DNA of 64,000 nt, from the NCBI RefSeq assembly GCF_000150275.1, contig NW_002060962.1:186001-250000 (forward strand). The letters run 5' to 3'. Shown here one piece after another: positions 4,818 to 42,525 of this stretch. The stretch comes from Trichoplax adhaerens (Eukaryota > Animalia > Placozoa). A model generated the notes under the pieces. That model did no database searches and was not told the DNA's origin. It saw nothing but the letters and a program-made list of their open reading frames with translations. A program made the translations under genes and the position numbers. Every line of letters starts with the position of its first letter. The stretch's first letter is position 1.

Positions 4818-5499
4818 TCTTGACTGCAATTAGGCTAACCATCAAGTTAGAATTTGGTTGATGATGGCGATTTATTATTGCGATTTACTCGACGTCTTTC
4901 AACTGGTTTGACTTTGGGATTTTCGAGCGTGCTATGTGCTACAGTACAGTACTGTAGAAGTGTAGTGCAGTTACACTGTAAGGGCGAGATTAACTTGGGT
5001 ATCACGAAGGAAAATAAACTATGTAGGCTCAATCAAGCCCAAAGTAGATCAAATGTTATATGTAGACGTAGCCCAATAACTGAGGGATGTGAATTTAGCT
5101 TTTATTTCTATAAATTTGTTCTCATTTTCACGTAAAATCTGTCAATAGTCTAAAATTGCTGCAGTGGTAAATGAAAATTGCTTACAGTACTGGACGCACA
5201 AATCCCGCCCATTCTCTACTGTAGTAGTGCACAGTACAGTAGTGTAATTACGGACAGACGTCCAATAGACAAATCTTCGTCCAGTAGTGTACATGTACTG
5301 GACTAATTAATTAATGAATTCATTCATTATAATTAATTATTATTATCAATCAATTTCACATACTGTACTGTACTTTAGTGGGGGGGTAATGACGTCATTC
5401 TTATTACTGTCCAGTATGGCGTCACTATTATTCAATAACAACTCTCAAGGGACACACAATACAATGTATGACATGTATACTGTACACTGTACAGTACTG

Positions 5500-9400: not shown

Positions 9401-11031
9401 AAAAGAGCTACTGAACGGATAAAACTGGAAGATCTAAGTGTCCTAGCCGAGGTTAGACAAATTTCTGATTTCATAGGATATATAGAAATGTTAAATAATA
9501 CCTACATAAATGAACAAAGTAATAACGATTTTGTTTTTATACTAGTTCCATGGAATTAGTTCTGGTTTAAAAGCCTTTTGTACAGAGATGAGTGTATCTG
9601 GTATTGAGGTATAGTAAAAGAACAAACGCTATATGTATAACTTCGAGTAGCCCAATTCTAATTCTTATTTACGAATCTCGCTATTTCGTACTACTACATT
9701 TAGGAGTGTAGACGAGCTTGCGGCGGGCATGGTTATTCATCGGCCTGCGGTATAGGTCATATTTATAATAATTGGTTAGCGTCTTGCACATACGAAGGCG
9801 AAAACACTGTTATGTACCTTCAGTCAGCTAAGTAAGTTTGTAAATTAAATAGACTAAGAAAGACATTTATAAAAGTAAGAGAATACATTAAATTAACAAT
9901 TTTTTAGATATTTACTTCGTTGTGTCAAGAATCCAAAGTCTGCACCTTTAGGTGTATCAGCAGTCTTACATAATCCACCATGTAAACATTGGGATATTAA
10001 GAATATGCAAGATCTAGAGAAGACGAATACAGTACTAGAAGCTTATAGAGCTAGAGCATATAAGTAAGTAATCGACACAAATACCGTAACTAGCTCTATT
10101 ATATCATTAACTCTGCAATCTTTGACAGAAAAGTAGCTATTGCTGATAAATACCTTCGCGAATTACAATCTGGTGGCGATACTAGTTACGATGCTTGGAA
10201 TAAATCTGGAATTAAATTAGTGGATTGCGCAAAGGTACTTACAACTGTTTAAAATATTTTAGTTAATCTCGGCTTTAAGTTTTTTCTTCACTATTTTTAA
10301 ATACTAAGTCTATACTATTTTCTGCTCGTTCTACAGGCATTTACTCACTATTTCGTAATAAAGACATTTTTTAATATGATTGAGAAATCGCGCTTGGGAC
10401 AATCTTGTCATCTACAGTTACATAGACTATCTATTCTGCTAGCTTTACATGGCATAGATCAAAATACTGGCGATTTTATGCTCGTAAGTATTCTGAATAA
10501 ATTTACTATTAACACAAACATAATATACATAATTATCGTTGGCGATAAAGATCGTATCATTGTACTTTATTAATCGTCGCAAGTTAAAACTAAGCGAGCA
10601 CTAATTGAAATTATAACATGTATTTTATCAGGACAACTTCATCGATTTTGAACAAATCAAACTCATTCGAGTAAAAATATTAGAATTATTTAGTGAAATT
10701 CGACCGGTCGCAGTTTGTTTAGTTGACGCATTCGATATACCGGATCAGACGCTACTATCTGTTCTCGGTAGATATGATGGCGACGTTTATAACAAACTAT
10801 TCGAATGGGCAAAAGAGGCGCCTTTGAATAAAACTCAAGTTCGTTATCTATTAGTAGTAGTCATAGATTGTGTGTTCGTTTATTTAGCTTAGGAAAAAAC
10901 ATGGAAGAAAAACTTTCATCGCTATTAATTAAACAGTTATTATAATTGATTTGATTTAATTGTTATTTGTATTGTAGGTACATTCATCATATGATAAATA
11001 CCTTCGGAACCTGCTTACAAGCAAGTTATAA
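6463..11031 (+). CDS. ACOX1: Peroxisomal acyl-CoA oxidase 1-like, multi-exon
   Basis: Exons encode DLRQER..., [13 protein letters not shown]...[10 protein letters not shown]|[13 protein letters not shown]...[16 protein letters not shown], catalytic CTYEGENTV and LGRYDGDVY. The C-terminal PTS1 is ...LLTSKL* (TAA 11029-11031). Confidence 0.95.
6733..6930. repeat. 67-bp tandem repeat, 3 copies, in ACOX intron 1
   Basis: Units GTATTGCAGATCAACGATAGCAAGCTTGCTTGATAAGCTCAAAAGAGAACAAATT... start at 6740, 6807 and 6874. Confidence 0.9.
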
Positions 11032-12268
11032 AGAGTTTATGTCGCTGAATTATCTTCGGATAATATTTAAGATAGATCTCAAGTTATCTGTTATCTTTGG
11101 TCACTCAGCTAAAGGCTTGATCTTAGTGATCATACTCGTATGGATTACATCGTACAACAAAATATCTCGATGTAACTCGATATCTTAGATACAAATAGCA
11201 CATTTACGTTTAAGTACTAGCGATACTGTTAGCCTTTTGCATTAGCCTAATTGTGGTATTTCTATACAATTTGATGAGTTAATAGTTATAATCTATTGAT
11301 TGAGCATGGAAGTATTTACGCTCTCGTTTACGTTTTTTATCCTGTCATTATCCACTTATAATAATAATCTTAATAAAGAGAATAATTCAAGTATAGTTTT
11401 TCTTATACTTGTATTGAATGATTGCACCCGTTGCATCTATTGCATCTGTTGTATATGGACCGTTAATATCAATAATACAATAGTACTTTAAACATGTCTT
11501 TCTTAAATTTTTTACTTATTAAGTCGTTCTTATAAGTCATAAGTGAAATTTAATCTAACAATGATAAATGCATGTATCTGTTTATACCAGTATAAATATA
11601 TTCCATATCTTCCAGTGAACTCTGTATACGTGTTTTATTGGTATGAATAGTAAATGTAGTAGAATTACTATGACTTACTATCGGGAGAATTGAAAGCGTT
11701 TGTATAACTTTACCTCATGAATATGGTAGAATACGCATATATATAATTTGATATCGTTCAGGATTAAGCGGTTAAATACTGTTAGCAACTATATAACCTA
11801 ATAGTTAAAAATTACGATAGCATGTATTGTAATCCTTCTGTTTTGTATTAGATGAAATATCGCGTAAGGTCGTTGTGGTTAAACATACTCATATCTAATA
11901 AATAATTTTAATATCAAGTTTACTATTTTCACGACTTGGAAGTACTAATTATAATTAATGTAATACTAACTCTATGGAGGAAGCTCTATTCGTGCATTGT
12001 AAATGAGCTTCTTTACAATTAGATTTTTGCAGAATATACTGCAGTAATTGCTTGATAAATATAGAAATATATACTCTATAGGATCAAAAACTGGCTATCA
12101 GTTTATTCATTCGATATAAAACAGGAACATGCTTGCAACTACTGATCACCAACGCATACCTTAGATTGGTTAGTCTCGTTATAGAAATATCCCCTGCCTA
12201 CGTGTAAAAAATATAATCATCTATAGTTTGACTCCATTTATTACAATCATGAGAATCCAAATAGAGTC

Positions 12269-12274
12269 AAAAAA
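12269..12274 (-). terminator. Pol III T6 terminator
   Basis: AAAAAA on the + strand lies immediately after the 3' strand of the terminal stem. Confidence 0.65.
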
Positions 12275-12417
12275 GCCATCGGTGACGGCGCAGTGCGTTT
12301 ATCCGGTTCCAGTTGATTAGAAGTACCGAAGAGTACGTATCAACGGATTCGGGAAGTCACTATTTGCCAGAGTAAATAATTCACATGAACGAAGTAACGC
12401 AATAGCTAAGCACCGAC
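12269..12417 (-). ncRNA. Candidate RNA polymerase III ncRNA, vault-RNA-like (~143 nt plus U tail)
   Basis: The minus-strand transcript reads GUCGGUGCUUAGCUAUUGCGUUACUUCGUUC...GAACCGGAUAAACGCACUGCGCCGUCACCGAUGGC-UUUUUU. It forms a terminal panhandle with two internal hairpins, and has TATA at -31, a PSE-like box at about -65 and a T6 terminator. The 5' part resembles vertebrate vault RNA (UUAGCU..GCGGUUACUUCG). Confidence 0.7.
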
Positions 12418-12438
12418 AAAAGTATAAAGGGTCGATTG

Positions 12439-12496
12439 TATTTATATATTTTCTTATAACGTTAATTGCTTTAGTTATGGGATTCGCATGACGTCA
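12439..12496 (-). promoter_or_regulatory. Type-3-like Pol III promoter: TATA (12439-12448), PSE-like TCCCATAACTAAAGC (12468-12482), CRE TGACGTCA (12489-12496)
   Basis: The motifs are read directly. Their spacing from the inferred start G at 12417 (TATA -31, PSE about -65 to -51) matches snRNA-type Pol III promoters. Confidence 0.65.
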
Positions 12497-13256
12497 CAGC
12501 CGACAGTTTAATGCCGGACAGTAATTTTTACTTCTGTAGGAGCTGTACACTGTACAGTACTGTACAGTTCGGTAGCTCGCCATTCGTATTGAAGTACTCA
12601 AAATTTCGTTCAGCAAATCTCGACTGTAGGTTAAAGATTCATTTGGCAATCGTCGATACTATCTAACTGTTCTGTACTTGAGTAGCCCCACATGCCGTGG
12701 AAGTAAAAGTATAGATCGATAGCGTGTAGCACTGTCCAAGGACTATCGTATAAAAGTATTGGTGACTGCGCCTAGCGTTCAAACTAATCCAAAGATCAGA
12801 AATTGTTTCCCATAAGCAATTTTTGTTTGTTTTTGATACGAAGTAACGCTTTGGCAATGAGCACTAACGATGGGGAGCGAAGTTTGTTGTTATTATATAT
12901 TGAGTTTGAATATATAATTTACTTCAGTTATTATACGATATGAGGTGAATGGCATACAGCATAACCTCCATTTGAGGTTGCCATGGAAATAAGAGAGTAA
13001 GCGCCTGAGACTTTATCCTGTACTGTATACAGTACAGTATGTATTAGTTAGCACTGGATGGAGATCAAGAATGTAAGTGAAGTAATATTGCAACGCACAG
13101 GACGTCTAGTGAAATGAAGGATCGTAAGTTATCATACATGTATTAGAAAGGAAATTAAGATTGCCATAAAATAAAGTAATAAAATCAGTGTCTTTTTGAG
13201 CTACATCCAGTATAAGAAAAAGTGACATTCCAACATCTTTGCTTTTTCCGTTCCTC

Positions 13257-28740: not shown

Positions 28741-29744
28741 CATCCTGTACAGTACTGTACGACTTGTACTGTACAGTACTGTACGACTTGTACTGTACAG
28801 TACAGTGGATGGCTGTACTGGTACAGTACAGTACTGTACTGTACAGTACAGTACTATAAGTACAATGAGCAGTACTTTGTACTGTAGGTACTTTTGAATT
28901 CATTTTTTGCTAATATCATGGTTGATCTTCATTGCATTACTGAAATCTTATGCTCTAGTTATATGCCTGGAGCTTACTGTACAGTACTGTACATGTTTAT
29001 GTCTATCTTGGAAGTTCATAGGCAGTCCATTGTGCAATTGAGGCATAACCTCATAAGCTATAGCGCCTTGACAACACTCTACGAAATAGGAAATTTCAAA
29101 AGGTCTTCTTTTAGTAGTCCGTGACAGTACACTACAGTTCTGTATGGCCGTCTTTAACAGTACAGTACAGTACTGTATACTGTACTCTGCTCTACGCTGT
29201 ACTGTACACTGTACGGTACTGTAAAGTATTTGGGAAATTCAAGTGATATTTTTCTCCATTTTTGAGGGGGAATCAAAGACTTTTTAATAATTACACCTGT
29301 ACACGCTGTACTATTGATCCCTCGCTCGTTATACTTTGCGTTGCGTTTGCCAGCGATACCTTTTACCAATTTCTATGATTCGATTTACAACTACTGTACT
29401 GTAGACTACTGTATCACCGCTTCCTAACAAACAGCGATTGCCATTAATCTCTTTCTTGCAATTTGATCAACTGCAAACTCAGCGTAAAAACAACAATAAC
29501 TCAAGCACTTTCGACTACGGCACATACGGTACTGTATTGCCTGGAGGCATTCAAGAGTATTGCAATCCTTTCTCTCATTCATCAAGCAACGACTACTAGA
29601 AAGAAACCAGCTTTCCTTTCTCAGCAGTCTTGACAATACTGTACTGTACATCAGGTCATCGCCATTACAGTCAACAAGACTGATACTGTATTCGTTGCAA
29701 TGGACCAACCAAAAATGCCAAATATGAATAAGGAGACCGGATCG

Positions 29745-40184: not shown

Positions 40185-41745
40185 AATTTATTGAAATTAT
40201 TTGCAATCGTCGAATAAAATCTGTTTTTGTAATGGTTGTACTAGGAATTGGAAAAACTGTCAGCAAATGTGAAGTTAACTACCATGAGATTTCATTGCAT
40301 CGTTAGCCCATAAAGTATTGCAAAATGAAGTAATCCATAACGATACCTCACGTATTTGCTAATATAACTATCTCATACGATGATCAGCTATGGAATATAC
40401 GAATTACAGCAGCGCTAACCTTTGCAAAAGTAGTTAACAATCTTGAAATTATTTGCAATTATAAAATAAGACTAGTTTACAGTACAGTTATGCTAGAAGC
40501 CAGCGTTCCATAACAGAAGCTAAAAACTGGCATCACATTTGAAATTAACTACTGCAAGATTTCATGATATTGTATATCCATAGTCAAAATATTGCAAAAT
40601 GAAATAATCCACATAGATACTTGTTACAAAATCTCGATTTGTAACGAGGAAATTTTCCAACAAAGAGACTACACTTTTCTTAGTCGAAACTTTTATTTAG
40701 TGCTTCTACTCTTTATTCTACTACCGTACAGTACTGTAACCTCTAGTCTATACCTTCTTTAAGTATATGACATATTACTATTTATACCTACGCAACATGC
40801 ACACGAACTAAAACAGGTTTAGGTAGCGTTAGCCAATAACAGAACGACAACCCAGCTAAAATGTCGTAAACAAGACTGCAATTACTTAGTTTAAGATCAT
40901 TGATAGCGTAAAATATATGAAAATTAGTAAGAAACATAGCTCAAAGGTTTAATACTGTGTGTTATAGGTAAGATTTGGTAGTCCATGTCTGACTCCATGA
41001 TGCAATGTAATGCAGCAGACCTAACTTTAATTAAGAGCTGGTTGCTGATTTTGAAATTACTTACAATCATAAAATAGAATTCGTTTACAATAATTGCACT
41101 AGGAGTTGAATACTGTCATCCATCTGAAATGAACTACAGACTGTCCTGCAAAGTCTCCTCATAATATCCTGTACAATGTACATTCAAAGGATTGTAAAAC
41201 GGAAAAATCCATATTGATACTTCACCTGTTAGCTAATTCACTCACGGACAGCCTACTCAACTATGCAACTTATTACACATAGTAATCCTTGCTAAGCTGG
41301 CCAATGATTTTGAAAATTCTTTGTAATTGCAAAATAAAACTTGTTTACAACTGTCATCCAATCTGGAATTAACTACTGCAAAGTTAAATCGTATTATATA
41401 ACTATACGAGAAAGGATTGCAAAACAGAATAATCCATATCAATACAGTACTTCATTTCTTTACAGACAATATATTTAACTATGCAATACTATACTGTACA
41501 CTGTATGTACTGTACATTGTATACTTTACTAAGCAACTTATATAATTAATCAGAGTACAGTAGAGCCAACCTTCACTAAAACTAGCTCATAGCTTTCAAA
41601 TTATTTGCAATTGCAAAATAAAACTTGTCTGCAATAGTTGCACTAGGAGCTGAAAATTGTAATCACATCCAAAATGAATTACTGCCAGAATTTATCCTAT
41701 TATACAACAATAACAATATTGCAAATAGAAATAATCTATTTTAAT
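40185..41745. repeat. Degenerate ~150-280-bp repeats, about 5 copies, upstream of ADA-A
   Basis: The blocks GAAATTATTTGCAAT..AATAAAA..TGTTT..CTAGGA..AACTAC..TATTGCAAAA..AATAATCC recur at about 40194, 40445, 41053, 41312 and 41597. Confidence 0.7.
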
Positions 41746-42048: not shown

Positions 42049-42525
42049 AAAGGCATCTTTATTTATTTATTTAATTAATTACCTGAATGCTGCATAGCTC
42101 AAGAAGATTGCAGTTAGACGAAGTTCAGCATCTCCACCATAAAGGTTTTATTACCCCTACAGACGTAAGATCGGTACTATACGGTACAGTGTACAGTACA
42201 CAGTATTGTAGAAACTGTACTGTACTCAGTACTGTACACTGTTCGGTACGGTATGTGGGATGGGACGGACGCGACTGGAACAGCGGCTCTTTCAGCTCCT
42301 GTACTGTACGCTGTACAGTATGCTCCTGCAAGCTTGCACAGTATCCATGGAGAACATGGCTGACCTGGTTAATAAAGGAAATTTCCATTCACCTTAATTA
42401 CATAAGCCTGTTGTAAGTTTTAATTTATCGTCTATATTATCATAGACTAATGGTTGAAGCTAATTGAAGTATATTGTACTACGTGCTGGTTACAGGAGAG
42501 TAGGAAGTATCTTCAACACCACGAA

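Follow-up and report, generated by a model that had tools for sequence, protein, structure and literature searches.

The minus strand of one intergenic region in the genome of the placozoan Trichoplax adhaerens carries what is, judging by its promoter and terminator, very probably a real type-3 Pol III gene, whatever the identity of its product, and we favour, with some caution, a placozoan vault RNA as the most likely product. Hertel et al. 2009 (PMC2655684) expected a vault RNA in Trichoplax, as MVP is present, but did not find one, and the locus described here is a concrete candidate for the vault RNA that is missing from that ncRNA annotation. The vault reading, put forward in an earlier note on the same DNA, is indirectly supported by several independent features, namely the 5' block and the register of the 3' end, the proximal cAMP response element (CRE), and the presence in the genome of MVP and a TEP1-type gene; it fails against the Rfam Vault model.

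Within the window (the whole 64-kb stretch of DNA that was analysed), the candidate gene is flanked by two plus-strand genes, one for an acyl-CoA oxidase (ACOX) and one for Ku80. On the minus strand, a perfect CRE, TGACGTCA (12489-12496), stands 7 nt upstream of a sequence match to the proximal sequence element (PSE), CCCATAACTAAAG (12469-12481); a TATA box, TATATAAATA (12439-12448), is found at -31, that is, 31 nt before G12417, the start of a predicted RNA body of 143 nt (12417-12275), and a T6 Pol III terminator follows at 12274-12269. All of these elements had been described in the earlier note, and each is where that note placed it. The CRE sequence occurs twice in the 64-kb window, against 0.6 copies expected, and the sole match to the PSE consensus, CCYATAAYNRAAG, in the same window (0.05 expected) is that of the candidate. 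Upstream of the promoter, at 12543-12568 on the minus strand, there is a cluster of GTACAG-type repeats that may be a distal or general promoter element. Repeats of this type (TACAGTRYWSWGTACAG, at most one mismatch) match 13 times in the window, where 0.02 matches are expected, with clusters at 5478-5496, 12543-12559, 13018-13037, 29168-29218, 41489-41505 and 42180-42315, and similar repeats are located upstream of the U6, MRP, RNase P and U4 genes. Because some clusters lie at other sites, the motif is not specific to small RNA genes; it looks like a general placozoan promoter element.

The comparison proposed in the earlier note, of the candidate's promoter with those of other Pol III genes in the same genome, relied on Rfam models to find U6, U6atac, MRP and RNase P, whose upstream regions were then aligned with that of the candidate. 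The candidate PSE is identical to that of U6atac at 11 of 13 positions, to that of RNase P at 10 of 13, and to that of U6 at 9 of 13; the corresponding upstream segments are aatCCCATAATAGAAG and TATATAAATccaatcga in RNase P and aatCCCATAACTAAAG and TATATAAATAcaatcga in the candidate. From the start of the PSE to the start of the TATA box the distance is 33 nt both in the candidate and in U6, and the start of the PSE stands 64 nt from +1 in the candidate, against 63 nt in U6 and U6atac and 57 nt in the Pol II gene U4. A genome scan for the combination of PSE and TATA box gave 18 matches (U6, RNase P, U4 and the candidate locus among them), versus 2 for a reversed control. Since PSE, TATA box and spacing match those found at U6, U6atac and RNase P in this genome, the candidate has the marks of a genuine type-3 Pol III gene, and with the genome-wide enrichment this strongly supports the earlier reading of the locus as a Pol III gene. 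A clear PSE common to Trichoplax snRNA genes had already been noted (Hertel et al. 2009, PMC2655684).

That the locus might be a silent relic, with promoter-like elements and a foldable stretch left behind after transcription was lost, would agree with the absence of the gene from the published ncRNA annotation (PMC2655684), but the promoter elements are all intact and exactly spaced and the terminator is clean, and we regard such a relic as very improbable.

An octamer, ATTTGCAT or ATGCAAAT, is present a few bases upstream of the PSE in U6, U4, RNase P and at C1413:108096, whereas the candidate, like a further gene on contig C1408, has a CRE adjoining the PSE at the octamer's place. Two near-identical RNase MRP genes (C1411:45142-45422 and C1401:1895392-1895672) are without the PSE consensus and carry instead long GTACAG-type repeat arrays and a TGTATAAAAA box. 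Within 1.1 kb at C1402:438491-439592 (minus strand), five partial, lower-scoring U6atac-like copies come after one full U6atac gene (104.8 bits).

Several other genes with PSE-TATA promoters are unclassified. The C1408 gene (C1408:3456837-3456949, minus strand) has the same CRE-N7-PSE-TATA promoter as the candidate, a body of ~113 nt and a T8 run; its RNA opens with a 9-bp hairpin and ends ..CCCCCUAACG before the U-run, and it has no Rfam match and no similarity to the candidate. As this gene has the CRE-PSE-TATA layout as well, the layout is not unique to the candidate. A three-copy family, with PSE CCCATAATCAAAG and GTATAAA, is found at C1407:1504802-1504839 and C1407:1506357-1506394 (both minus strand) and at C1413:3236672-3236710 (plus strand); in the two C1407 copies the promoter is followed by a stretch of ~67 nt with paired ends (CGAGUG/CACUCG) and a T6 run, the C1413 copy diverges after ~40 nt, and the family has no Rfam match. 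At C1411:8058999-8059039 (minus strand), ~265 nt separate a PSE-TATA promoter from a downstream T5 run; this locus has no gathering-level Rfam match, only weak matches to miRNA families elsewhere in the locus, and it might be a missing longer Pol III RNA such as 7SK.

With several such genes present, unclassified Pol III RNAs are common in this genome, and the candidate could be one more of them: a real type-3 Pol III gene for a lineage-specific RNA unrelated to vault RNA, in which the likeness at the 5' end is due to chance or to a leftover tRNA-like box A. The other PSE-TATA genes, one of them with the same CRE-N7-PSE layout, speak for this explanation, which, taken with the evidence on the RNA itself given below, we consider unlikely.

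The candidate gene is single copy apart from one haplotig. In the genome (105.6 Mb, 1414 contigs), a BLAST search and a covariance model of the locus matched nothing but the locus itself and a single copy on C1307, a small contig, which rules out a SINE or any other repeat. Positions 10937-12674 of C1307 align with positions 10774-12507 of the window, the contig ending 90 nt upstream of the RNA start, and because the two are 98.9% identical over these 1.7 kb (13 mismatches and 2 gaps), C1307 probably represents a haplotig left unmerged in the assembly. No differences separate the two copies in the RNA or in its promoter, but 230 nt of flank are equally identical, and so this identity is uninformative on constraint. 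Searches for orthologues beyond the genome returned no long placozoan contig: a query with the neighbouring hot-dog protein led no further than a 7.7-kb contig bearing a Trichoplax sp. H2 protein and two contigs of ~2 kb, an ACOX exon query gave only fragments of 50-71% identity, none of them clearly placozoan, and a metagenome scan with the 5' motif gave no match.

The sequence evidence for a vault RNA begins with the 5' block, GCUUAGCU..GCGUUACUUCG (RNA 7-28; 12390-12411, minus strand), which contains a half-degenerate box A. In a manual, after-the-fact alignment, without a computed score, to a single vertebrate lineage (human vtRNA1-1, 1-2 and 1-3, sequences from PMC10087102), RNA positions 7-28 are identical to human vtRNA1 positions 7-29 in 19 of 24 aligned columns. 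At the other end, the 3' closing strand (AACGCA, CU, GC, GCCGU, CACCGAU; RNA 119-140; 12278-12299, minus strand), read from sequence and fold, has the same order as in human vtRNA1, namely CGC..GCGC, a bulge of 4-5 nt, and the strand that would close a 7-bp terminal helix. CGC..GCGC and this possible helix stand in the same register as in human vtRNA1; the sequence of the terminal helix itself differs from the human one on both strands.

A reduced 5' motif matches the genome 12 times against 19 in the control, that is, at the background rate, so that the 5' match gains its weight from where it stands, at the beginning of a Pol III transcript; among loci with the PSE-TATA pattern, the candidate is the only one that has the motif. 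The chance of such a match is ~1e-3 by an analytic estimate, not computed by a tool, that allows for gaps, offsets and some ten RNA families. If the likeness were a matter of chance or of a leftover box A, the shared block would not be expected to reach, as it does, well past box A (UUACUUCG) while lying as far from the 5' end as its vertebrate counterpart, and the preserved order of vault elements on the 3' side likewise argues against an unrelated RNA.

The internal boxes are less well kept. Within the 5' block, box A is half retained, UAGC being kept and AGYGG lost. The degenerate box B-like element, UUCCCGAAUCC (RNA 63-73; 12345-12355, minus strand, by reading of the sequence), contains a remnant, CGAAUCC, that agrees with 7 of the 11 positions of the box B consensus, here taken from established knowledge. 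The element follows the box A-like element after 43 nt and is set apart from the 3' strand; the earlier note, too, described the internal B box as degenerate. Boxes A and B are the main conserved blocks of vault RNAs in the literature (PMC7058938), and in this respect, with box A half kept and box B at 7 of 11, the candidate departs from the family. A proximal CRE-like element, a highly conserved feature of vault RNA genes (PMC7058938), is present in the candidate but not exclusive to it, the C1408 gene having a CRE too. In length, the candidate (143 nt plus the U-tail) is within what is seen among vault RNAs (~84-141 nt, and up to ~190 nt in Leishmania). Treating internal hairpin 2 together with its linker (~45 nt) as inserted sequence would shorten the RNA to ~98 nt and bring the box B remnant next to the 3' strand, where it lies in human vault RNAs.

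The Rfam Vault model, which the earlier note had proposed as a check, did not recover the locus. RF00006 (gathering score 34 bits) had no match at E<=10 on slices of 361 nt and 153 nt covering the locus, and it matched nothing in the whole genome, a result that favours an RNA unrelated to vault. At the gathering threshold no Rfam family matched anywhere in the window, and ARAGORN found no tRNA there. At E<=10 on the same two slices, a match to snR64 (E=0.58), which is on the opposite strand, and a 16-nt pseudoknot match (E=8.5) were dismissed as noise.

The predicted RNA folds more stably than its shuffled counterparts: its minimum free energy is -40.8 kcal/mol (z = -3.06), and 3 of 200 shuffles do as well. 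In the minimum-energy fold (ViennaRNA), 5' CGGUGC pairs with GCACUG and a 3' hairpin, GCCGUC-ACC-GAUGGC, forms before the U-run with a pair probability of ~0.98. The panhandle drawn in the earlier note is accurate in its parts, as the segments GUCGGUG/CACCGAU and UGCGUU/AACGCA and both internal hairpins are present, but it is not the minimum-energy fold: at -36.3 kcal/mol it is less stable by 4.5 kcal/mol. Its terminal pairing consists of 7 bp, plus GC, plus 6 bp, and a terminal helix of at least 7 bp is obtained in 4.8% of shuffles; a panhandle in the candidate RNA is accordingly plausible, not demonstrated. Internal hairpin 1 (AUUAUUU/AAAUAGU; RNA 39-59; 12359-12379, minus strand) is one of several alternative pairings in its region, and internal hairpin 2 (GUUGAU..GUACU-CUUC-GGUAC..AUCAAC; RNA 75-105; 12313-12343, minus strand) is predicted in every model. 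An RNA unrelated to vault RNA would presumably work via the more stable fold, whose closed 5' helix and 3' terminal hairpin form a shape typical of La/LARP-bound RNAs, and the difference of 4.5 kcal/mol between this fold and the unlike panhandle counts in its favour.

The protein partners that a vault RNA would call for, raised as a further check by the earlier note, are encoded in the genome. MVP is represented by four MVP repeats on contig C1406, and its presence in Trichoplax is also stated in PMC2655684. All five TROVE-domain matches fall in one gene (C1414:8853736-8864800, plus strand), in which the TROVE domain is followed by DUF4062, a P-loop region, and WD40 repeats that weakly match the TEP1 propeller, an architecture that, as predicted from sequence, is that of TEP1. 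TEP1_N repeats were not found in the gene, an absence given no weight against TEP1, since the remaining domains fit. A second TROVE locus, of the Ro60 type, was not detected in the genome, which argues against a Y RNA; with TEP1 as the sole TROVE protein detected, the candidate RNA may in addition take on roles like those of Y RNAs, a proposal already made for trypanosomes. The presence of TEP1 and MVP in a genome without another candidate for their RNA partner is also a point against an unrelated RNA.

Assignment to some other known Pol III class, be it a Y RNA, a short 7SK, a telomerase RNA or a snoRNA, appears highly improbable. In favour of such a class, type-3 promoters drive the Y RNA and 7SK genes of vertebrates. 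The published list of RNAs missing in Trichoplax also includes Y RNA, 7SK and telomerase RNA (PMC2655684), and a passage of PMC2193651 has TEP1 also binding telomerase RNA. Against these classes, no Rfam family matches the RNA strand at E<=10 (the weak snR64 match being on the opposite strand), and, for a Y RNA, the Ro60-type gene is lacking among the TROVE matches. At 143 nt the RNA is far below the known lengths of 7SK, and no CCCUAA permutation, as would suit the TTAGGG telomere repeat assumed here as usual for metazoans, occurs in the 149-nt sequence.

We hypothesize that, if the candidate is a vault RNA, SNAPc would bind the PSE and Brf2-type TFIIIB/TBP the TATA box, while a CREB/ATF factor at the CRE would modulate output. 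La would be the first to bind the U-tailed transcript, whose 5' and 3' ends would pair as a bulged terminal helix enclosing a variable central domain, which in the candidate would carry an extra hairpin; the TROVE domain of TEP1 would then bind the RNA and carry it to MVP vault particles, and a free pool of the RNA may act on other proteins, as in mammals. It is quite possible, as a tentative proposal, that the candidate is a true placozoan vault RNA whose transcription has come to depend wholly on the external SNAPc/TATA promoter, with the 5' 'box A' block retained. If so, the 5' block would be conserved across animals for RNA function (TEP1 or vault binding) and not for TFIIIC-driven transcription, and one RNA might combine vault-type and Y-type roles.

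Confirmation would show that one of the simplest animals has a vault RNA under a promoter independent of internal boxes, would for the first time separate the nucleotides of a vault RNA that serve the RNA from those that serve transcription, and would supply a divergent sequence with which to improve the Rfam Vault model, which misses the locus. Apart from the vault question, the locus helps to define a small set of unclassified placozoan PSE-TATA genes. The earlier note goes too far in suggesting that the locus would carry vault RNAs back to the base of animals: Rfam Vault matches have been reported in the cnidarian Hydractinia (PMC11067881), homologues in two lophotrochozoan lineages are mentioned by citation in a passage of PMC2770079, and a validated vault RNA exists in Trypanosoma brucei. 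Given these reports, a vault RNA from a placozoan would extend a known family by one new, unusually divergent member and would not be a new kind of RNA.

Among known systems, the nearest in promoter are the U6, U6atac and RNase P genes of Trichoplax itself, which share with the candidate the PSE consensus, a TATA box ~30 nt before the start and a T-run terminator, while the RNA body of the candidate is unrelated to theirs. With the vertebrate vault RNAs (vtRNA1-1, 1-2, 1-3 and vtRNA2-1; RF00006) the candidate has in common a predicted Pol III transcript ending in a U-run, the 5' block GCUU(U)AGCU..GCG(G)UUACUUCG, equally far from the 5' end, the 3' series of CGC..GCGC, bulge and, as a possible pairing in the candidate, terminal helix, a variable central domain, an upstream proximal CRE, and a genome that encodes MVP and TEP1. 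The differences are considerable: vertebrate vault RNA genes have a composite promoter dominated by box A and box B, whereas the candidate has a full snRNA-type PSE and TATA box and a box B that is degenerate and displaced; human vault RNAs are 88-98 nt long and without hairpin 2, whereas the 143 nt of the candidate include ~45 nt extra between the box B remnant and the 3' strand; and the candidate is without a score against the Rfam model. Y RNAs resemble what is predicted for it, as small type-3 Pol III transcripts with pairing 5' and 3' ends that are bound by a TROVE protein, but the candidate lacks the Ro-binding helix motif and has no Rfam Y RNA match at E<=10.

Hydractinia (PMC11067881), compared here by description only, is likewise a non-bilaterian animal with computationally predicted vault RNA genes; these pass the Rfam model and are present in 3-4 copies, whereas the candidate fails the model and is single copy. 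A precedent for how the candidate is assigned is that of the trypanosomatids. For the T. brucei vault RNA (TBsRNA-10), expression, Pol III dependence and TEP1 co-immunoprecipitation are experimental, whereas the candidate is predicted from sequence. The vault RNAs of T. brucei and Leishmania, whose lengths exceed the vertebrate range and reach ~190 nt, were assigned by short 5' and 3' similarities in a bulged terminal helix, by Pol III transcription, and by the presence of TEP1 as the organism's only TROVE protein, a situation resembled by that in the genome of the candidate, where TEP1 is the only TROVE protein detected.
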